Positions 2,496 through 61,300 of a stretch of 64,000 bases of DNA are shown here, piece by piece. Under the pieces are notes generated by a model. It had not been told where the DNA came from. It worked only from the letters and a program-made list of their open reading frames with translations, and did no database searches. Numbering within the stretch: the stretch's first letter is position 1; every line of letters starts with the position of its first letter. The position numbers were made by a program, and so were the translations under genes. Origin of the DNA: Malacoraja senta (taxonomy: Eukaryota); NCBI GenBank assembly GCA_038087875.1, contig JAXLNO010002112.1:62001-126000 (forward strand). The letters are read 5' to 3'.

Positions 2496-3142
2496 AGTCT
2501 TATGAAATAAAAACAACAAATGAAAGGGTTCTTGGCAGAGTGAATGTAGATGGATTTCCCTTGAACGGGATTATTGTTTGAAAACACAGCAGTTACAGAT
2601 TTAGGACAAGAAGTGTTTTTTTTCTCTCTTTACTTTGGAACATTTCCTCAAAGGGGGGTTATTTTAAAGCAGAGATAAATTGATTCTTTATAGGCAATGG
2701 GTGAAATATTACTGGGGTGTAGGTGGAAATACAGAACTGAGGCTAAAATGAAATTGGCCATAATCATGTTGATTGGTAGAGCAGATTGGGGAGGGCGAGT
2801 GGTATACTGTTATTACAAAAAGGAGGACAATTGGCTGCTCAAGCCTCCTCTGTCACAGTAAAATTATGGCAAAATCAATCTTGGTTTCAACACTGCTTCC
2901 CTACTCTCACGTACACCTCGATCTCTTATTTATGTGTGATGATAATGACATCAAGATCTTTCAACTGACAACAGACTTAAAATGAGCAGTTTTTTAGCTT
3001 GTAATTCTAAACCAATTGGAGTCTGGTTCACCTATTGGCTTTTTCACTAATGCATCAATATGAAAATTGCTATTGATTTTTAATCCTTTTTTTAAAATGT
3101 ATTATTACTTTTGTATTTCAAACTTTATTTCATCTCTTTCAG

Positions 3143-3362
3143 CATTGACAAGATAACCAAGGTAGCTTCTCCCGTGCTGGTAATTCATGGTACTGAGGAT
3201 GAAGTGATTGATTTTTCCCATGGTCTTACAATGTACGAGCAATGCCCAAGAGCAGTGGAACCCCTCTGGGTCGAGGGAGCCGGCCACAATGACATTGAGC
3301 TTTATGCGCAGTACCTTGAAAGATTGAAACAGTTCATTAGTCATGAACTGCCTGTTTCTTGA
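3143..3362 (+). CDS. ABHD17C: Alpha/beta hydrolase domain-containing protein 17C (depalmitoylase), last coding exon
   Basis: Acceptor tctctttcag|C at 3142/3143, TGA at 3360-3362. Translation [72 protein letters not shown] matches the recalled ABHD17C C-terminus ([21 protein letters not shown]) better than 17A or 17B. Contains the catalytic Asp (EDEVID) and His (GAGHND). Confidence 0.93.
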
Positions 3363-7899: not shown

Positions 7900-8290
7900 A
7901 CTGTAATTCCTGGGTCTTTGTCCCTCGGTACAGGATTTTACCGGCATTAAAGGCTGTGGAAACGAGGCTGCGCATCGCAGTCTGAACTACTAGAAGCCGG
8001 CGCCTGCAGCTCGGCTCCCTGCACATCGACACCGAGTTACCAGCTCGGCTTTGGAGGCGGGTACACCGCATGTGGCCGTGCTTATTTCTCGCTTCAGGTT
8101 GGGGATGCGCTTGAGATCCCAGTGCTTGGCTCGCTGTCCCGAACGTTTCGCCGCCAGGTGATGTCACATGCCACGTGGATTTTGTTTTGACTCCAGCTGC
8201 AATCAACACTACAACAAAAGCGGAGGAAAGAAAGGAATCAGTTTGACCGGGCGAAAAGCCGAGATTGGTACTAGGGACCATGCCGCGGTA
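7900..8290 (+). promoter_or_regulatory. CpG-island promoter (upstream promoter of the CEMIP2-like gene)
   Basis: Sharp local CpG/GC enrichment in an AT-rich background. GC box GAGGCGGG at about 8053, adjacent E-boxes GTCACATG (8163) and CACGTG (8172), reverse CCAAT (ATTGG) at about 8263. Ends in ATG plus a splice donor. Confidence 0.7.
8280..8287 (+). CDS. CEMIP2-like: First coding exon (ATG CCG CG) of the CEMIP2-like gene
   Basis: ggaccATG Kozak at the end of the CpG island, donor CG|gtaaaa. Phase 2 joins exon 10892 in frame (M-P-R-F-K-M-Q-T-D...). Confidence 0.6.
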
Positions 8291-8907
8291 AAATACAAAT
8301 ATTTCGTCTACTATTTCTGAGCATCAATTCCAAAGTTTCATATTGTGCGTGTGTTGTGTTCCCCCATACATTGAAACCCCAAATCATTTAAAATGGAAAG
8401 ACACACTGGATTGACGATAATCTAACTTTAAATATATTTGCTTAGAGAAAAAAACGAATGAAATAATCAACTTTTAACCTTGCTTTTATTTCCATGTATT
8501 TAAATAATGTAATTAGAACTGCACGTTGTTCTTTTACTTAAACGATGAGAAATCCTTCCAACTTTAGTTGAAGTGACCTTTTTCTGCCGTCCTCTCACTT
8601 CTGTTGACTGACAGTCCAACAACTCCCACCCTCGATCGGCAGTCTCCAGTACTGTGCAACATTACTGGAAACAGTATAATTCTGCCAGGCAGGTCCTAGT
8701 GCGTGGTGATTTACACAAATAATAAATAGACGTTTGTTTCTATTGAAGAGTAAACTTAATGTCAATGATGTTTCTCTGGCCCTAATTTGCAAAGTTCAGA
8801 CACGGCTAGCCAGCTTGAAGTTCGCTGCTTGGCATGTTATAAAATTACTTTAACGGAGTATTTGGCAGGAGAATGAGAAGACGACTGAGAGAATAGTTTA
8901 TCTTCAG

Positions 8908-9780: not shown

Positions 9781-10159
9781 TCCTCATAACAATCAAATGT
9801 GCTTACTTGTGTGAAGACGTTGATGACCGTGGAGTTCAAGGAACACAAATTTCCTGGGCGTTCATAGTTTTAGTCACATCATTGCTGTGAATTTAGTTTG
9901 TCACGTTGCGACCAACAAGTAACAGCGAATGGAGTTCCAGAGGTCAGAAATACATATATTTATTCAGGAAGTAATTTGGAAGAAAACATACAAATCTTTC
10001 AACCTAGCCCTTTTTCTTGCTACCCACTTCTAATTTGATAGTTACTCACAATTTCTATGGACGCTAGGTTAAATGTAAATGTTTATCTAATGACTGGGTT
10101 ATGCAGCATTTCGGGTGGTATCTGTGGAGACAGAAATTTCAGGCCAAAGGACAAGAACA

Positions 10160-10891: not shown

Positions 10892-11244
10892 ATTCAAAAT
10901 GCAAACAGATGAAACCCCCAAGTTCCAATCTTCCCTCAAAGACAATTGTGACAACTGCACAGTTAAGAGGTTTTCGCAAAGTACAATACCTCAGTCCCTT
11001 CATTTATGGCCTCATCAAAAGCAGTTGCTGTTTCAAAATGTCTCGCCTGCATTGGAAGCTGCTCCCAGGCTTCTCATGCCTGAGGATCATACACTAAAGA
11101 AAAGGAGGAGAGTGTTTTCTAGCCCAGAGGTAGCAAGAGAATTTGCACTTCACCTGCTGTATTTTGCAGTTTTTGCTGTAGGTGTACTGGGTTTACTTCA
11201 CTGGCATGGCATGATACAGCTATTCCAAGGAAAAAGTTGCAAAG
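10892..11244 (+). CDS. CEMIP2-like: CEMIP2-like exon: cytoplasmic tail + type II transmembrane helix
   Basis: Acceptor ttttcag|A, donor AAAG|gtaagc, open frame. KKRRR basic cluster (11097-11111) precedes hydrophobic FALHLLYFAVFAVGVLGLLHW (11142-11204). Ends in phase 1. Confidence 0.75.
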
Positions 11245-18910: not shown

Positions 18911-19396
18911 ATGGTGATCAACAAATTCAAAGCACTCATTGGAAGTTGTCATACTTCACAACCAACTCATCTGACATATACCCACTGCACAAACGATTTG
19001 TACGGAGCACAATACCAAAGAAAGACAAACAGGAGAAAAGTTTGCTGACTATCTACCAGAGAATGACAGAAGTAAAAGAAATACTACTGCAATGCGAATC
19101 TCTTGTTAAAGTGACCAATTATGTTCTGAGAGAAGCTTTGGGGAAAACTTTGGAGTTCTACCCACTTCCAACCTGTGATCAGAGGCTGAATAATCAGATT
19201 ACCAAAGTTGATCCACTCATTCTTGTTAGGGTTAAGATAAAACCACAGTTACTTTACCAAGTCTTACACTTCCTGAAAGAGCTAGACTGGCTGGTGGATG
19301 CTCATCTAGCAAAAGCGTTCTACACTGTGAAAAAGCTAATGGTTTTTAAGCAAGAAATGATATTGGGAAAGACAAGTAAAACCAATAATGAACATG
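18911..19396 (+). CDS. CEMIP2-like: CEMIP2-like exon: 162-aa extracellular stalk with furin-like KRFVR/S site
   Basis: tgttcttcag|AT acceptor, CATG|gtatgt donor. 486 nt, stop-free, symmetric phase 1-1, so it links the TM exon (phase 1) to the G8 exon (phase 1). Confidence 0.68.
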
Positions 19397-20473: not shown

Positions 20474-21869
20474 GTAGGAAAGAACTGCAGATGCTGGTTT
20501 AAATCGAAGGTAGACACAGAATGCTAGAGTAACTCAGCGGGTCAGGCAGCATCTCTGGAGAGAAGGAATGGGTGATGTTTTGGGTCGAGACCCTTCTTCA
20601 GACTGATGTCAGGGGAGTGGGCGGGACAGAGATAGAATGTAGTCGGAGACAGGACTGGTGGGAGAACTAGGAAGGGGGAGGGGATGGAGACAGATGGAAC
20701 GCAAGGGCATTTGAAGTTAAATAAGTCAATGTTCATACCGCTGGGGTGTAAGCTACCCAAGCAAAATATGAGGTGCTGTTCCTCCAATTTGTGCTGGGCC
20801 TCACTCTGACAATGGAGGAGACCCAGAGCAGAAAGGTCAGATTGGGAATGGGAGGGGGAGTTAAAGTACTGAGCAACAGGGAGATCAGGTAGGTTGAGGC
20901 GGACCGAGCGGCGGTGTTCAGCGAAACGATCGCCGAGCCTGCGCTTGGTCTCACCAATATACTGATGTTGATACCTGGAACAGCGGATGCAGTAGATGAG
21001 GTTGGAAGAGGTGCAGATGAACCTCTGCCTCACCTGAGCAGACTGTCGGCGCCCTTGGATGGAGTCGAGGGTGGAGGCAAAGGGACAGGTGTTGCATCTC
21101 CTGCAGTTGCAGGGGAAAGTACCTGGGGAGGGGGTGGGAAGGGACGAGTTGACCAGGGAGTTGCGGAGGGAACGGTCTCTGCGGAAAGCGGAAAGGGGTG
21201 GAGATGGGAAGATGTGGCCAGTAGTGGGACCATGTTGGAGGTGGCGAAAGTGTTGGAGGACATCTCCAATGATCTAGTATGGAAAACCCTAAAGAATGAG
21301 GAAATCTCTGATGATCTAGTATGGGAAACATCGGAGATGTCCTAATTCTTTAGGAAACGCAGGTTCCCCACCCATTATAGATGAGGCTCTCACTAGGGCC
21401 TCCTCGATATCCCACAGCTCCGCTCTTGCTCCCCCCGCCCACATTCGCAACAAGGACAGAGCGCCCCTTGTCCTCACCTTCCACCCCATCAGCCGTCGCA
21501 TACAGCACATAATCCTCCAACACTTTCACCATCTCCAACGGGATCCCACTATTGGCCACATCTTCCCATCTCCATTGTCAGAGGTCCAGCGCATATTGGA
21601 GGAACATCACCTCATATTTCGCTTGGGTCGCTTACACCCCAGCGGTATGAACATTGACTTCTAACTTCAAATATCCCTTGCTTTGCCTCCCTCTCCATCC
21701 TCTCCCCATCCCATTTCTCCCACCAGTCTTACTGTCTCCGACTACATTCTATCTCTGTCCAGCCCACTGACCTGACAGTCTGAAGAAGGGTCTCAACCCG
21801 AAACATCACCCATTCCTTCTCTCCAGAGATGCTGCCTGACCCGCTGAGTAACTCCAGCATTTTGTGTCT
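20474..21869. mobile_element. Penelope-like retroelement (GIY-YIG endonuclease end) in inverted configuration
   Basis: Minus ORF 20542-21033 NLIYCIRCSR...YIGETKRRLGDRFAEH is a GIY-YIG endonuclease. An inverted partial copy lies at 21340-21869, with hammerhead motifs at both ends. 16-bp TSD ACCACCTGTAGATTGT at 20458-20473 and 21870-21885. Confidence 0.9.
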
Positions 21870-24185: not shown

Positions 24186-26384
24186 CTACTCATTACAATG
24201 TTTTGCACTCACTGCCCCAGTATTGTTTCTTTCTTTTTCTCTTTGTCTTCATTTATCGCCATCTATCTGTTGTGGACCTTTATTGTAGGATGCAGCTTGA
24301 TAGAGGAGCTTTGTTCAAAATATGTTTGGTGTTAGGTCCATTCTCTCATATGTTTCAGTGAATAGGTCATCAACAACTTGGAGTGTGTCCTCAGAACATG
24401 CGCATACACTAGTGCTGACTGCACACAACAGCTCAACAGCTCAAATAAATTCAAGGAAAACAAGTCAAGTTTGCACAACCAGTTTTCAATGCTGGTATCA
24501 TTTTAGTGAATCTGCACTGTAAACTCTGCAAACCCAATATATCTCACTAGCCAAGATCAAGTGCAGTATTCTACTATCAAAATGCTTAGGTTTTGTCACA
24601 TTGTACCATTGTCTCATTGTCCCAGTCATGTCAAGGTGAATCCATCAAGGCAGTTCTACTGAGGCAATGTGTAATTCATGTATATCAGGAATCATATCAG
24701 TCTTAGGTGAGTCAAACACACAGAAAATGCCTCAGAGTAATTTAGTCAAAAAGATTTGGAAAAATCTTTTTGACCTCCGAAGGTAGTTTAATAAAACTCC
24801 ATGAGGCATATGTATTGAATTTCAACATCTACAAATCCACATACCTCTCAAACTGGAAATGTTCTTGATTCTTATGGGTTTACCTTTAAAGGGCTAAAGT
24901 GCCTGACATCTTAAGTGAAGGGCTTAACTTAAGGTCAGAGGAAAGGTCGAGAACTGAAAAGTCATCTATCTATTCCTACACGTGCTGCCTAACCCGCTGA
25001 GTCCTCCAGCATTTATTTTTTCCTTAAGTGAATCTTTGTTTAACATATATTTTAGTAGTGCATTCAAAGGATCAATATTAAAATCTAAATAAATCTTAAC
25101 CTTTTTATTTCAAAGTTACCTCCTTACAATTAATACCAAATGATCTTTCAGTCAGAAAAAAAATCGGTGCTCTTTATCATTTAAAAAATATCAAGTGGAA
25201 CTCCTCATTCTACCCTTTTCCGTTGAAAAAAAATGATTTCCGGAGTCTGATAGCTTAAGACTTTGATCATTTCTTGACCTTCTCCAAGGCCTCAATTTCT
25301 GTCGTCCATCAAAGTGAGTAAAATTGAGATACATTTCTAACATCTGCTGTGAGGATCTGAACAGCAAACTTCTGTCTTCAAGGTTTATTCCTCATATCAT
25401 GGCTTACACACAGCGACATTCATTGCATGGTCATAGCACCTCTGGGTTCATCATTGGCTAATCATACTGTCTGATAGAATGTCACCTGAAATTCTTAAAG
25501 TTAAATGTTTTAATTGTACGCATCCCATTCACTAAATCCATTTGTGTATGCTATTTTTCTAGATGATTTGTCAGAATGTCCCATGCTTTTCCATGTTATG
25601 TCTATCCATTTGCTTTGTTTTTATAGTCTTAAAATGGCTGAAAAGGAACAGGACCCACAGAAAGTCCTTTAAAGGTAGAGTTCGGCCAAGACCCTTACTT
25701 GGACCAGACTGTGTTATATGTTGTTAGTGCATGGCAACTCCAGTGTATAACGATCATTTCACTTGCTCAAACATCTTGGGTACAATCCAATTCTTCCCAT
25801 TTGTTTCGTGCTCCATTCTGTTGCACTGACAGGACTTGGCACTGAGTAGGTCAATGAGTTTCGTGATACTATTTATCCCGAATAAATAGATTTTGTTGGA
25901 CAAATCCTGAATAAATTATACACTAATCTCAAAGTATTGCCATTCTTGACAGAAAAATTGTTTTGAGTTGTGTTGGACATGATGTTTGATATATGAATAA
26001 TATAGATAGGACACGAGATGAAATTCATTCAGACTGGCACCAAGCCATAGGGTTCCTTTATTAATGAGAAAAAGGAGGACTTTTTTAAAATAATAAAATC
26101 ATCAAAAAGCACAAACAATAAATTATATTTAGTAGGTGGCCATTCATAGAGAATGACACACATAAATTTACTTTAAAAAGAGGAAATTCCACCCTATCAT
26201 AAGATAAGCTTGGGTGTACTGATGATGTTTAAAAGGTGATCGAAAGTTAGTAACATAAAATCACTTGAGGTAGAATACCTGTCATTTTAATGTGTGTTAC
26301 ATGGGCTGTTAAAAAAAGATGTCATGTTGAATCACTCTGTTAAAATCAAAAGAAAGATAGCCAACTGATTATTTAGTTTATGCA

Positions 26385-33730: not shown

Positions 33731-34999
33731 GCTGTACTAACCCATACCCCTTGACTCTCGTCCAAATTGGCACAGATTAGGTGGGCCAGAGGACATTTTT
33801 CCATTCTTTCTGACTCCAAGAATCCAAGCCTCCACACACCTGGCCCCAGCACCAACCCCTGTGGCACTCCGTTAGGTTCAGTCTCCAAACCTAGCCCAAT
33901 AACTAATCTCCAATCAGCAGTATATTACCAGAGTATCACATTCTCCAATAAAATCTTATGAACATTTGAATACTGCACAACCACGGGTTTATACTTATGC
34001 AATTTTGTTAACTACAATCTCAAATCTGATTTCCCTTTCATAAATTGAGGTTGACTGCTGAATCTTATAATTACTTTCAATGTGCCCTTCTATCGCTTCC
34101 ATAATAATAGATTCCTACATTTGCTCTGCAACCAATGTCAGGCTAGCTGGTCTTAAACTGGAAGTTGACAATCAATACATCCAATATCTCCACTGCCAGG
34201 TTTTACCAAACCTTGAAATGTAAGTCGTGAGTCCCGGGATTTATCGACTTTACGTTCCATTAATACTTCCATACATTTTTAGTGTTTTACTGCCTTAAAT
34301 GGAAATGTGTTTGTTGTAATCTATGTATTCATTCTCTAAATATCATATTGGTTGTCTACTGTCAGGCATTTTTAAAGTAGATTTTCAACTTATCAGAACC
34401 ACAAGTGCCTCATGCATTCATATTTGGTTTTGTTTAGTTTTAAGATCTGGGTTGCAATAGAATTAATTCACTTGCAAACTTTTTTAGGTAATATAATCAT
34501 TCTTCTTTTTACCCACGTTATTAGTTAGCACATTGAATTTAAAATAGCCTGTTCTCTAATTGGTTCCACAACATAGAAATCTAAAAATCCCATCTTATAT
34601 GGATACTGTGAATACATCCTCCACCCTACTGCTGCTAATTTGGTTTTCATGGTATATGCGTAGGTTGAAGTCCACCATGGTTATTGCATTACAATTGCAA
34701 CATGGAGTGAGGATGAGGGAGACGGTGACAGTGTGACATTGAATACGAAGATTGGGGAGGGAAAAGGATCAATGATCTGAGGTTAATGAGATGCAACAAA
34801 TGGGTTAACTGGAATTAAATGGTGAGAGGTTGTGGTAAGATAAGAATGAATGAGGTAGAATGAGATGGAACAGCATTTGGCACAACATTTAATGCTGGTG
34901 CCTCAATGCTGCAGGGACTTGAGATATATGCTGACCTCGGGTGATTTCTACAGGAAGTTTGCACATTCTCCCTGTGACCACACGTTTCAGACTAGTGTT

Positions 35000-35181
35000 A
35001 AAGAAGGAACTGCAGATGCTGGAAAATCGAAGGTACACAAAAATGCTGGAGAAACTCAGCGGGTGCAGCAGCATCTATGGAGCGAAGGAAATAGGTAACG
35101 TTTCGGGCCGAAACGTTACCTATTTCCTTCGCTCCATAGATGCTGCTGCACCCGCTGAGTTTCTCCAGCATTTTTGTGTAC
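35000..35181. mobile_element. Perfect fold-back Penelope-derived element
   Basis: 74-bp perfect inverted arms 35033-35106 and 35108-35181. 15-bp TSD TTTCAGACTAGTGTT at 34985-34999 and 35182-35196. Confidence 0.9.
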
Positions 35182-35249: not shown

Positions 35250-36060
35250 GCGAGGGGAGAGATAATGAGAAGGAGATGGGGTGAGGAGGGAAGGGCTAAA
35301 GAGGAGTGTGGGTGTGGTGCAGGTGAGGAGGAGTGAGAGGGGGCATGAGGTGAGGGTGTAATGGTGATGAAAAGGAGCGGTGTGATAAGGATGTGGAGTG
35401 GATGGGTGCGAGAGCTGTGGGGGTAAAGTGATGAGGAGGGGTGTGGTGGAGGTGAGCGGTGTGCAGGAGGTGAGGGGTGTGGAGGGAGGGTGAGAAGTGT
35501 GCCGGAGGAGAGGGGAGTGGGGGAGGTGAGGGCTGTGGTGCAGATGAGGGGTGTGAGGAGGAGGAGGTGATGGGTGTGGAGAGGAGGTGAGGTGCAGGGG
35601 TGAGGGGTGTGGATGGGGAGATGAGGAGTGGTGAGGGGTGTGGAGAGGAGGTGAGGTGCAGGGGTGTGGATGGGGAGTGTGGAGGAGGTGTGATGGGTGT
35701 GATGGATGTGAGGGGTGTGGAGAGGGAGTGAGGGGTATGGAGAGGAGGTGAGGTGCAGAGGTGAGGGGTGTGGATGGGGAGATGAGGAGTGGTGAGGGGT
35801 GTGGAGAGGAGGTGAGGTGCAGGGGTGTGGATGGGGAGTGTGGAGGAGGTGTGATGGGTGTGATGGATGTGGGGTGTGGAGAGGGAGTGAGGGGTATGGA
35901 GAGGAGGTGAGGGGTGTGGATGGGGAGATGAGGAGGTGAGGGTGTGGAGAGGGAGTGAGGGGTATGGAGAGGAGGTGAGGGGTGTGGATGGGGAGATGAG
36001 GAGGTGAGGGTGTGGAGAGGGAGTGAAGGGTATGGAGAGGGGCGTGAAGGATGTGGTGGT
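35250..36060 (+). repeat. G-rich complex minisatellite (GGAGAGGAGGTGAGGGGTGTGGATGGGGA variants)
   Basis: About 800 bp of reiterated G/A/T units, almost C-free, abutting the internal promoter. Confidence 0.9.
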
Positions 36061-36069
36061 GTTGAGCTG

Positions 36070-36240
36070 GGATGGGGCGGCCGGTTGGGTTCCCCCTCGG
36101 CGGGCGCTCGCTGTCACAGAGGGCGGACCGAGCCAATGAGCACCGGGAGGCGGGGCGGCAGCGCGGTGTCGCCGGGCGAGGTGAGCGGCCAGCGAGCTGG
36201 GTATAAATAGAGCTGTGACTGCCGGCTGCGGGCAGTCGGC
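36070..36240 (+). promoter_or_regulatory. Internal CpG-island promoter with GC boxes, CCAAT and TATA
   Basis: GGGCGG at about 36075, 36121 and 36152; CCAAT at 36133; TATAAATAG at 36202-36210, in canonical spacing. CpG-rich, followed by a leader with several GT donors (36403, 36418, 36430). Confidence 0.78.
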
Positions 36241-36730
36241 GGCGAGCGGCGGCGGCGCTGGGACAGACTGACTGACTGACACTCACCAGCCCACCGGCAG
36301 ACAGCGATCACAGCTTCTCAATCCGCGGCAGACAGACAGACAGACGGACATCAGCGGCCGGAGCCTGGGAAACGCACTCTGGCTGCTCCCAACTTGCTAC
36401 AGGTGCGCACTACCCGGGTGGGTGTTGCGGTGAGCGGGTGGTGGGGACCAGGTTGGCAGAGGGTGTTCTGCGTGGCGGGAGTGTGTGGGGGCAGTCCTGG
36501 TACAGGGAGCTGTGCTGACTGTAGTACGTGCCAAACAGTTTCTGATTTCTAGGCTTCTAGTTTGTATTTTGTGCTGCCTTCTCCATTGTGATTCTCCATC
36601 AACCACCCGCCTGGCCCCTCTACTATAATAAGTATGGATTATCTATCAATAATCCATGGCAAACCTGCCCCTCTTCCGAGAGACGTTGACAGCCTGAAAC
36701 TAGGATTAAACACAAAGCATCAGCGGCTGG

Positions 36731-36776
36731 ATGAGCCGGAGCCCATTTGTGCACTGCACACTGGTTTATACAACAG
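36731..36776 (+). CDS. Candidate alternative N-terminal coding segment (MSRSPFVHCTLVYTT) for the internal-promoter isoform
   Basis: ATG at 36731, ACAG|gtgtgt donor, phase 1 compatible with exon 36865 across an 88-nt intron. Weak Kozak context. Confidence 0.3.
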
Positions 36777-36864
36777 GTGTGTAACTTTCTTGTTATCAAC
36801 ATTTGAACACTATATATTAAGAATTTGCAACCACATGTGATAGTGAATGAGAATTCTCTTTTAG

Positions 36865-37005
36865 TGGATTGCCCAGATAAGGCCCCATATTTATTACCCT
36901 GGAACCCTGGACATCATGAAAATAAGAAGGTTAAGATTGGACGGAGAATGTTCCTAAAACTGGAGTCTTCTGCCTCGCTACATTCCATTATTATAGAGAA
37001 CGGGG
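36865..37005 (+). CDS. CEMIP2-like: CEMIP2-like exon, start of G8 domain (VDCPDKAPYLLPWNPGH...IENG)
   Basis: ctcttttag|TG acceptor, GGGG|gtaagt donor. Homologous to the CPDQ..PWNPG/WDPG start of CEMIP/TMEM2. Confidence 0.93.
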
Positions 37006-37280: not shown

Positions 37281-37839
37281 GTAAACTCGTGTTCAACGAT
37301 GCGCCGAAATCCCCTATCGCTCTGAAAGCCCGCTATATTCTGATCAGGAACGGGGGCGAGTTGCACATCGGAGCGGAAAAATGCCCCTATATTTCCAGCG
37401 CCACTATTACTCTCTACGGAAAGTCGACAGATGCATTAAACGTGGAGCATTTTGGTCAGAAGTTCATTGGCGTGGACAAAGGTGGTGTTTTGGAATTGCA
37501 CGGAAGGAAAACCTTGTCTTGGACATTTTTAGCCCAAACTCTCTACCCCGGTGGCTTGCAGTCTGGGGCTTACCGCTTTGACAGGTACTGGGGCAGCAGG
37601 GGTATCAACATCAGGGTGATAGATGCCGGCACGGCCAAGGTGCTCGCAGCCCACCGTTTCGACACTCACCTCTGGGCGGATGAGAGCAGGCGGCTGCAGG
37701 AGTTCTTACGCCGCCAACCCAGAGGGCGAATAGTGGCCATCGCTGTCGGAGACTCGGCCGCCAGGAGACTGACGCTGTCTGCCAGGAATGACCTGAGCGA
37801 ACTGCTGGGGAGCAAAGAGGCGATGTATCTGGGCTACAG
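37281..37839 (+). CDS. CEMIP2-like: CEMIP2-like exon, G8 + first GG domain
   Basis: ttttgcag|GT, ACAG|gtgagc. Encodes GGELHIGAEKC, SRRLQEFLR and GRIVAIAVGDSAA motifs typical of TMEM2. Confidence 0.95.
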
Positions 37840-38668
37840 GTGAGCCAGCTCGGATCGTGCATGGCCGCACCGCCGCGCTCCCACTGCGTTTTGAGGAATG
37901 TGTTTACATTTTAAATCCAGTTTACTTTCAACAGACAGTAAGACGCGTCCCTGTCGTTTACTGCTTTAATTCAATTCGCGTGCTAGATTAAATCTAATCC
38001 GGTAAACGAGGCTTTCCGTTTGCTCATTTGGGGCGGCAGTTTTTACCCACGTTAATTACCCTCTTACCACTGTTTGCCTGCGTTTATAACTGTGTGACAA
38101 CAAGATGGAGGAAACCAGAGGCCGGGGCATTCCCTATTCCTCACATGCAGTCGGAAACGTTGCTTGACGTGGAAGGTATCGATTATCTTGTCAACTGGGG
38201 TGAGATTTTCAACTCGCAGGTCCTTTAGCAGATTTGGATCAATGCCAAGGGTACACATTCGCTGAAGTATATTTTAATGATTGCAATTGGAACCACCATG
38301 GACAGCTCCCCGGGTCCTTTCTCGGGCGACTGGTCAGATTGGTTGCAAAGTGAGAGTAAAACGCAAAGTGCTGGAGCTACTCAGCGGGTCAGATAACATT
38401 TGTGGAGGGAATGGACAGGAGATGTTTCCTATGGGGACCCTTCCTCGGTTTCCTCCTCCCTCCACCAGCACAATAAGTTTTGCTCAAGATTCCAGCATAT
38501 GCGGTTACCTGTGTCTCTAAAAAAAAAGACCATACTTGAAACCCATAATGTGTATGTTTATATAGTTCAAATTATGTATTCATTTGTTTCATTCAAGCAT
38601 ATTTGCCATTGTAAATCAATCACAGTGGCAGACAATTTCATTATGATCTTTGCCAATCTTGACTTTAG

Positions 38669-60070: not shown

Positions 60071-60374
60071 CGGGGCTGATACCAAGTAAACAAAAAATAT
60101 TCTGCTTTAAAATTCACAGTTTCTTCAGAATATCTTGCAACAATACGAGTAAAACTGCATTGTTCTAGCGATAAGTGCCAACATACAGTGGAGTACAGAT
60201 AGATATATCTGCTGCTGTGAAGCTTAAATAATAAATAATGAATATTGTGGGTTCACATGTAATCAATAATGTGTATAAAATATTGAATCATTCTCTTACC
60301 ATTCTGGCATATATTGCCAGCAACAGCCATTGGATCTTCTAATAACATGCTCCATGTGCAGCAAGAAGAGTCTA

Positions 60375-60925
60375 AAGGGCCTGTCCCACGGGCATGCGAC
60401 TCCATGCGGCAAGCGCGACCTAACCGGAAGCGGGGGCCGCGCGGAGGTCGCAGGGCCGGTCCCACTTCGATCGCCGGAGCCGTATGGAGTTGTGCGGAGC
60501 TGGTCCACACATGGCGCGGGGCTCCGAAAAACTGACACTGTTCAAAAATTCCTCGCGGCAACGGCCTGCCGCCCCGCAGCCGCATCGAGGCCGTGCGCGC
60601 CGCATCGACGGCCGTGCGCACCGCCTCGAAGCCGTATGCAGCCGCCTTAAGGCCGTGCGCACCGCCTCGACGTCGTACGCAGCCGCATCGAGGCCGTATG
60701 CACCGCCTCAACGGCCGTGCGCACCACCCCGACACCGTACGCACCGTCTTGACGTCACTCGACCTCCGCGGGGCCCCCGCTTCCGGTTTGGTAGCGCTTG
60801 CTGCATGCAGCCGCATGCTGGTGGGACAGGCCCTGTCCGGGGATCACTCGACCTCCGTGCGGCCCCCCGCTTCCGGTTAGGTCGCGCTTGCCGCATGGAG
60901 TCGCATGCCCGTGGGACAGGCCCTT
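60375..60925. mobile_element. Young CpG-rich MITE (non-autonomous DNA transposon)
   Basis: About 76-bp near-perfect TIRs starting AAGGGCCTGTCCCAC, flanked by TA. Internal ~21-bp tandem repeats and a duplicated right end at 60755-60833. Confidence 0.88.
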
Positions 60926-61300
60926 TATTTACCATTCAACTGTTGTTTTTATTATTTATAATCTCCAATTTTCTTGATGTTTACACTTTGCTGCAAACAT
61001 ATTTGGCATAATATGCAATGATTGCTTCATTTTATTTTGGCTGAAATCATGTAACAAGAAAAGATTTGTCATTTAATGATTTATTTATATGGCTTTAAAT
61101 ATCTTATGCTCAACTGATAATGAAGGATTAATAATTAATTAGTGTTTAAAACTGTTGTATTTAGCCTTCTGTTCCCGCTGAATCTTGGTTTCTGATGTCT
61201 ATTAATTCCTTGGGCCTCAGTGTCTGCCTTCTGTTTTCAATAGTTTATGTCTCAAGAACCGTGACAGATCTGTAACTTCTGCTCTGTATCTTTGACATAG

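Follow-up and report, generated by a model that had tools for sequence, protein, structure and literature searches.

The stretch of Malacoraja senta DNA analysed here (the window, 64 kb in length) carries the last exon of ABHD17 (3096-3359) and, beyond it, a gene that we assign from its sequence relationships to CEMIP2-like, the third paralogue of CEMIP and CEMIP2 (TMEM2). Searches with exon 6 of this gene returned, as the best full-length relatives, proteins that their sources name 'cell surface hyaluronidase CEMIP2-like', and such relatives occur in birds, turtles, crocodilians, lizards, frogs, salamanders, coelacanth, gar, sturgeon, bichir, sharks and rays. No mammalian CEMIP2-like protein was found among the matches listed, and the paralogue is apparently missing from mammals. 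When isoform X1 of Leucoraja erinacea was mapped by tblastn, the exons of the window proved to be 91-100% identical to it. A maximum-likelihood tree, whose rows include the Leucoraja and Amblyraja CEMIP2-like proteins as stand-ins for the window protein, places the CEMIP2-like clade (support 100/99) as sister to CEMIP2, with CEMIP forming a separate clade. Precomputed Pfam families agree with the domains of CEMIP2-like proteins (G8, ILEI/GG and the CEMIP beta-helix). ABHD17, CEMIP2-like and CEMIP follow one another in this order on one strand in the loci of Amblyraja and the eel (Anguilla); the window stops before the 3ʹ end of CEMIP2-like, and CEMIP itself lies outside it.

Full-length isoforms of the gene begin in an upstream CpG island and encode a cytoplasmic tail with a type II membrane anchor, a stalk and a basic micro-exon before the G8 domain is reached in exon 5 (Table 1). 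Three donors finish in phase 1 with G, and each can therefore join exon 5. The protein sequence of exon 6 is 96% identical to that of Leucoraja. Exon 5 also carries an in-frame Met codon at 36948, which is the start used in short gene models of other species.

Table 1. Features of the CEMIP2-like locus, with positions counted from the first letter of the window
Feature	Position	Strand	Remarks
Upstream CpG island with a first exon of full-length isoforms	7901-8300	+	
Exon for cytoplasmic tail and type II membrane anchor	10892-11244	+	ATG 10899; phase-1 donor; predicted to be bypassed by the internal promoter
Stalk exon	18911-19396	+	162 codons, phase 1 to 1; predicted to be bypassed by the internal promoter
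Basic 48-nt micro-exon VLKWLKRNRTHRKSFK	25627-25674	+	Predicted to be bypassed by the internal promoter
Intragenic CpG island, candidate promoter region	36040-36500	+	Intron 4 of the CEMIP2-like gene
Conserved promoter module: CCAAT box (36133-36137) with flanking GC boxes (36121, 36153)	36110-36158	+	
TATA box TATAAATAG	36202-36210	+	Sole TATAWA within the island
Predicted non-coding first exon (leader)	36233-36402	+	Start placed from the TATA box; donor CAG/GTGCGC
Conserved 5ʹ mini-exon	36553-36776	+	Candidate starts 36553, 36561 and 36681; donor CAG/GTGTGT
Upstream ATG	36634-36636	+	Strong context (A at -3, G at +4); 52-codon ORF overlapping the 36731 start
Predicted long-ORF start of the anchor-less isoform, MSRSPFVHCTLVYTT	36731-36776	+	Phase 1
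Exon 5, start of the G8 domain (VDCPDK...)	36865-37005	+	From tblastn of Leucoraja X1; splice sites checked
Exon 6, G8 and first GG/ILEI region	37281-37839	+	CpG-rich, observed/expected 0.83

Several other features of the gene were recorded during this mapping. The 5ʹ exon of the upstream island (8190-8245) has a 2-nt insertion relative to Amblyraja and Leucoraja, and its donor reads GAAAG/GAATCAG here versus GAAAG/GTATCAG in those species. Because of the insertion and the GA donor, the MPRGFCF... N-terminal extension of isoform X1 cannot be made in the same way, and the difference could be either a real change or an assembly error. The segment 25563-25674 carries a hydrophobic ORF (MICQNVPCFSMLCLSICFVFIV...) with an in-frame ATG as its start; this ORF continues across the acceptor of the basic micro-exon and is equal to the N-terminus of isoform X2 of Hypanus sabinus. 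This ORF may represent a second anchor-less start with a signal-like or anchor-like segment; basic residues lie on the C-terminal side of the hydrophobic segment, and no CpG island was found nearby. The pyrimidine tract of the same micro-exon includes UGC motifs, a trait of regulated micro-exons. The largest CpG island of the window is located within the gene at 60301-61000 (700 bp, 62% G+C, CpG observed/expected 1.15), approximately 300 bp ahead of an exon, and has long ORFs on both strands. On the minus strand of intron 3, a long ORF at 20545-21660 carries a GIY-YIG-like motif (...YIGETKRRLGDRFAEH...) and is presumably the remnant of a Penelope-type retroelement.

An intragenic CpG island in intron 4

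The segment 36040-36500 comprises 461 bp with 68% G+C, 42 CpG dinucleotides and a CpG observed/expected ratio of 0.82, and it qualifies as a CpG island under thresholds of at least 200 bp, at least 50-55% G+C and a ratio of at least 0.6. The corresponding ratio is 0.24 in the 9.3 kb of intron before the island and 0.34 over the whole window. Since the island resides in intron 4, 663 bp before exon 5, transcripts that start there would skip the tail, anchor, stalk and micro-exon. An earlier note on this DNA had described an island with GC boxes, a CCAAT box at 36133 and TATAAATAG at 36202, positioned 660 bp before the G8 exon and roughly 28 kb after the first CpG promoter. We recovered all of these elements; the TATA box precedes the G8 exon by 663 bp and follows the island at 7901-8300 at a distance of 28 kb.

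The arrangement of motifs was compared with a canonical layout in which GC boxes are accompanied by a CCAAT box at about -60 to -100 and a TATA box at about -30. Three GC boxes (36075, 36121 and 36153) reside upstream of the TATA box, the CCAAT box precedes it by 69 bp, and a CAGT is present at 36233, 31 bp beyond it. The order and spacing of core and proximal elements agree with the canonical layout, provided that +1 is placed near 36233. The 64-kb window holds a single instance of a TATA box that is accompanied by at least two GC boxes and by a CCAAT box 35-120 bp upstream. When the island was shuffled 5000 times with its dinucleotides preserved, this arrangement never appeared, and a TATAWA of any kind was present in 7 of the 5000 shuffles.

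Self-BLAST revealed no second copy of the island within the window, and an origin from a repeat-borne promoter was excluded on the basis of this single-copy status. An Rfam scan of 34-39 kb yielded nothing at the gathering score; its sole matches were sub-threshold, microRNA-like hits to both strands of a palindromic repeat at 35044-35170. That region includes a palindromic insertion of about 190 bp (34993-35181) that is not found at the orthologous sites of Amblyraja and Leucoraja, although many copies of the element exist elsewhere in the Amblyraja locus, and the insertion is probably a MITE. The promoter region is directly preceded by a G-rich minisatellite of approximately 800 bp (35250-36056; GC skew 0.78) with periods of 20-68 bp and 161 bp and with G-quadruplex potential. 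This minisatellite is found in all three skates examined (Malacoraja, Amblyraja and Leucoraja) and varies in length among them.

The predicted leader, the mini-exon and candidate start codons

The predicted leader exon ends at 36402 (GT at 36403-36404) and the mini-exon ends at 36776 (GT at 36777-36778); these ends, as well as the boundaries of exon 5, are amended by one base relative to the earlier note. That note had also proposed a leader of about 170 nt that is free of ATG codons, which holds, as no ATG was found anywhere in 36233-36633. The leader is judged to be non-coding because indels of 6-8 nt distinguish the skates within its GACA/GACT repeats. Its donor is kept in the skates, and the whale shark (Rhincodon) retains ACAG/GTG. 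A crude scan for acceptors with pyrimidine tracts did not fix the 5ʹ end of the mini-exon, and the same scan missed the known acceptor of exon 5 as well.

Beyond the leader, ATG codons occur at 36634, 36656 and 36731, and the last of these opens a frame that splices in phase 1 onto VDCPDK, all as the earlier note had read the sequence. ATG 36731 yields the 15-residue peptide MSRSPFVHCTLVYTT plus one base, which joins exon 5 in phase 1, and the frame remains open through exon 6. It is the third ATG when the full mini-exon is used and would be the first only with the acceptor at 36681. The strong-context ATG at 36634 is kept in Amblyraja and Leucoraja and is missing in the whale shark. If the mini-exon is skipped, the out-of-frame ATG at 36916 overlaps the Met codon at 36948. 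Both splice forms consequently carry an overlapping upstream ORF ahead of the long ORF.

Comparison with other vertebrates

Among the three skates, the CCAAT/GC-box module (36110-36158) is identical, the TATA box is likewise identical in Amblyraja and Leucoraja, and two substitutions are present in these species between the CCAAT box and a point 30 bp beyond the TATA box. The promoter region of the window is 97% identical to that of Amblyraja. Identity of the core promoter among the three skates (97.1-97.6%) was compared with a neutral intron baseline of 95.8 +/- 2%, and footprinting from skate to skate is uninformative because the neutral intron identity is already 95.8%.

The comparison with the whale shark is more telling. 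In its locus (L002), positions 9975-10021 align to window positions 36110-36156 with a score of 36, versus 22.8 +/- 3.1 for shuffled sequences. This score was reached by 1 of 300 shuffles, such that the 47-nt match is moderately significant. The annotated range of the whale shark gene starts at L002:10001, inside the CCAAT/GC module, and the counterpart of the TATA box is CATAAACAG, which is duplicated. The mini-exon (224 nt) is approximately 70% identical to L002:10515-10740 (226 nt), where its acceptor and donor are kept, and the intron that follows is also kept (85 nt in the whale shark versus 88 nt in the window). Both 5ʹ exons and their spacing are retained.

Across the window, colinear matches to the whale shark are confined to exons, the block of the mini-exon and its intron, and two other short non-coding blocks. 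One of these two blocks lies in intron 6 (38221-38333) and the other ahead of the exon at 61299 (61111-61298), and both may be conserved elements with a regulatory role. The mini-exon block holds TGACAG and GGATTA motifs, which we take to be MEIS-like and OTX/PITX-like, respectively, and the conserved block could be an enhancer instead of an exon. In the gecko, a strong CpG island (L005:11201-12600) is found directly upstream of the G8 exon, and the gene model begins downstream of the stalk exon. Similarity between the gecko island and either the skate promoter or the mini-exon did not rise above that of shuffled sequences, and only the position is shared.

Gene models of relatives were also evaluated. 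Elasmobranch isoforms were gathered from protein clusters at 90% identity and their N-termini were compared; all RefSeq isoforms discussed here are computed predictions. Isoform X6 of Amblyraja radiata (XP_032906160.1, 1289 aa) has the N-terminus MMSRSPFVHRTLVYTT-VDCPHK, in which the mini-exon is coding, and it equals the isoform predicted for the window apart from an extra Met and an Arg in place of Cys at position 9. The start at 36731 with this Arg is also present in the genome of Leucoraja. Short isoforms of 1240-1249 aa that start at the Met of exon 5 (MFLKLESS, window 36948) are modelled in Rhinoraja, two Mobula species, Pristis, Heterodontus, Carcharodon, Cetorhinus and Scyliorhinus canicula, with three transcript accessions for the short product of the last species. 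Models of this kind result where a non-coding 5ʹ exon is spliced onto exon 5. In the only Rhincodon model, a GC-rich first exon, which lies in a CpG-rich stretch some 500 bp ahead of the G8 exon, is spliced to exon 5.

Altogether, at least nine elasmobranchs besides Amblyraja have models that begin at or just upstream of the G8 exon. An orthologous start is represented by Amblyraja X6, the eight further species named above and Rhincodon, in each case by a gene model and not by raw transcripts. In birds, lizards, frogs and bichir, many models similarly begin just ahead of the G8 exon, with N-termini that are unrelated. A search for spliced fragments with the VYTT-VDCP junction gave only an unspliced genomic ORF and an unrelated fragment. 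A GenBank protein of Scyliorhinus torazame (2814 aa) was also encountered in which CEMIP2-like and CEMIP are apparently fused. From these gene models and from the conservation described above, a start site at the G8-proximal position looks old and widespread.

Predicted product, rival readings and significance

The earlier note had proposed that one gene may make both an anchored protein and a short CEMIP-like protein, which would be secreted if the peptide at 36731 works as a signal. The first part of this idea, an anchor-less message, agrees with Amblyraja X6, with the models of at least nine further elasmobranchs and with the conservation in the whale shark, whereas the secreted form is not supported. 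A Sec-type signal peptide is expected to begin with a short n-region, often basic, that is followed by a hydrophobic core of roughly 7-15 uncharged residues, and in a heuristic hydrophobicity test the 15-residue N-terminus lacked such a core. Its best 12-residue Kyte-Doolittle mean is 1.12 in the window and 0.54 in Amblyraja and Leucoraja, compared with 1.98-2.91 for controls that include shark CEMIP signal peptides, the eel N-terminus and the anchor of the CEMIP2-like gene itself. The longest run without charged or strongly polar residues is 8 residues in the window and 7 in Amblyraja versus 9-15 in the controls, and the core is interrupted by His in the window and by Arg in the other two skates. 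At position 9, where both other skates carry Arg and the window carries Cys, Arg is the ancestral skate residue, and Cys arose in the lineage of the window.

Conservation of the peptide is similarly restricted. In the whale shark, 48 nt separate the homologous ATG from the donor, compared with 46 nt in the window, and the peptide is therefore out of frame there (phase 0); this ATG opens a short upstream ORF. The N-terminus is in frame only in the three rajid skates. By the tree, the gene falls outside the CEMIP clade, and no signal peptide was seen on the ORF of the internal promoter. These sequence comparisons indicate that the conserved feature is the promoter with its non-coding exons and not the N-terminal peptide. 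Because the ORF lacks both a signal peptide and an anchor, the protein is predicted to be cytosolic. In addition, most short models begin past the first part of the G8 domain, which would then be missing from the product, if one is made.

We consider it probable that the island is a conserved alternative intragenic CpG-island promoter for RNA polymerase II in intron 4 of the skate CEMIP2-like gene, and it is very likely that the gene does possess an internal promoter by which the membrane-anchor exons are bypassed. Such an element is an ordinary alternative promoter, and it is already represented in the automated annotation of sister species. GC-box and CCAAT factors together with the TATA box would set the start near 36233, and the resulting non-coding first exon would be spliced either to the mini-exon or straight to exon 5, thereby omitting the cytoplasmic tail, membrane anchor, stalk and basic micro-exon. 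The long ORF would then begin at ATG 36731 in rajid skates and at Met 36948, as modelled, in most other species. Its product, if translated, is predicted to have neither signal peptide nor anchor and to remain in the cytosol, outside the secretory pathway, and the overlapping upstream ORFs suggest that translation would be poor. For M. senta, we infer that the promoter is used, precisely where transcription starts and what becomes of the protein, whereas the motifs, the splice compatibility, the matching annotated isoforms of relatives and the conservation in the whale shark were observed.

The reading that competes most directly with an alternative promoter accepts the conservation of the island but holds that it is an orphan CpG island or a promoter-proximal enhancer whose transcripts, by-products of its enhancer activity and laden with upstream ORFs, are non-productive and possibly degraded, such that the conserved block acts mainly as regulatory DNA, no anchor-less protein is made and the 'isoform' is a product of annotation pipelines that pick the longest ORF. 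We regard this as unlikely. The N-terminal coding solution differs per lineage: rajids use the mini-exon ATG, most species use the Met of exon 5, and the whale shark and birds use an ORF in a GC-rich exon 1. Sequence is conserved and the reading frame is not, an overlapping upstream ORF precedes the long ORF in both splice forms, and most short models begin inside the G8 domain, past its first Cys. However, short models recur across many independently annotated species, the conserved acceptor, donor and length of the mini-exon point to a spliced exon, and the short product of Scyliorhinus canicula has its three transcript accessions.

Far less credible is the notion that promoter-like motifs have clustered by chance, without any start site, in GC-rich DNA beside a minisatellite. 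The individual motifs are indeed short and the island adjoins 800 bp of G-rich repeats, but the shuffles never reproduced the arrangement, CpG is kept at an observed/expected ratio of 0.8-1.0 against 0.34 for the genome, the module is conserved in the whale shark, and annotated transcripts of relatives begin here. We give just as little credence to a soluble, secreted CEMIP-like enzyme with MSRSPFVHCTLVYTT as its signal peptide, as the earlier note had envisaged. The phase of the ORF does fit the G8 exon, and CEMIP follows the same exon logic, in which a short first coding exon precedes the exon with the CPD motif. Against this, the longest run without charged or strongly polar residues spans 8 residues and the hydrophobicity maximum is far under that of all controls, Arg occupies the middle of the core in Amblyraja and Leucoraja, the peptide is out of frame in the whale shark, the short models of most species have no N-terminal extension, and the start is the third ATG when the full mini-exon is used. 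On these sequence grounds, the anchor-less product is unlikely to be a secreted enzyme of the CEMIP kind.

The preferred reading, an alternative promoter, has parallels among known systems. Intragenic ('orphan') CpG-island promoters likewise use an island in the gene body far from the 5ʹ promoter, skip 5ʹ exons, carry GC boxes, CCAAT and TATA elements and keep their position across species. The skate element differs in that its activity is predicted from sequence and in that a TATA box within a CpG island is a less common combination. In gelsolin, the IL-1 receptor antagonist and yeast SUC2 invertase, alternative first exons remove a signal peptide and thereby create an intracellular isoform. 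The skate gene resembles these systems in having two starts, of which the downstream one omits the targeting segment. However, both isoforms of those genes have been shown to be made and to be functional, whereas the intracellular skate product is predicted only, and it would consist of a large, normally extracellular ectodomain in the wrong compartment with an N-terminus that is unconserved. A further close match is Amblyraja XP_032906160.1 (cell surface hyaluronidase-like isoform X6), which represents the same gene with the same mini-exon start and G8 junction. CEMIP (KIAA1199/HYBID), the next gene downstream on the same strand, is similar in that a short first coding exon precedes the exon with the CPD motif and in that anchor and stalk are missing, but it has a true signal peptide and belongs to a separate clade. 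No island comparable to the internal one of the skate was found at the 5ʹ region of Amblyraja CEMIP.

The earlier note had further suggested that the anchor-less form could model how secreted CEMIP arose, and here the comparisons point the other way. In homologues from amphioxus, Lingula and hagfish, as in CEMIP, the CPD motif is immediately preceded by a signal peptide. Judged by this arrangement in the outgroups, the secreted layout seems to be ancestral, whereas the anchor and stalk seem to be derived, having been added later at the 5ʹ end. CEMIP is, moreover, an older branch of the family as well as the neighbouring gene. One could go further and propose that the G8-proximal island is the retained ancestral promoter of the family, that anchor, stalk and micro-exons were added together with a captured upstream promoter, and that the anchor-less transcripts are functional. 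We put this forward tentatively and think it quite improbable. If it were true, the promoter would have persisted from sharks to squamates, over more than 400 million years, and would have been retained for a function of the anchor-less transcripts themselves, either as intracellular protein or as regulatory RNA.

A separate observation concerns the eel. The CEMIP2-like model of Anguilla anguilla (L003:10001-14922) has neither anchor tail nor stalk and starts with the strongly signal-like MVLLLFLLVWPLSHA, and it may be a natural secreted version of the paralogue. Its signal-like first exon follows ABHD17 by 5.3 kb and precedes the G8 exon by 4.5 kb. This exon is more likely derived from the anchor exon than from the internal promoter, and it was set aside as support for the latter.

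Our literature search found no paper on an internal promoter of TMEM2/CEMIP2 or CEMIP2-like, or on an isoform of either that lacks the anchor. Although it is the third member of the hyaluronan-degrading CEMIP/TMEM2 family of vertebrates, CEMIP2-like has hardly been studied, and the presence of two conserved starts matters for cloning, knockout and quantification of this gene in fish, amphibians, reptiles and birds. Knockout of the 5ʹ exons would spare the internal transcripts, and expression counts for CEMIP2-like mix two transcript classes. The evolutionary direction proposed for the family is corrected as well, in that the outgroups suggest that the secreted layout came first and the anchor later.
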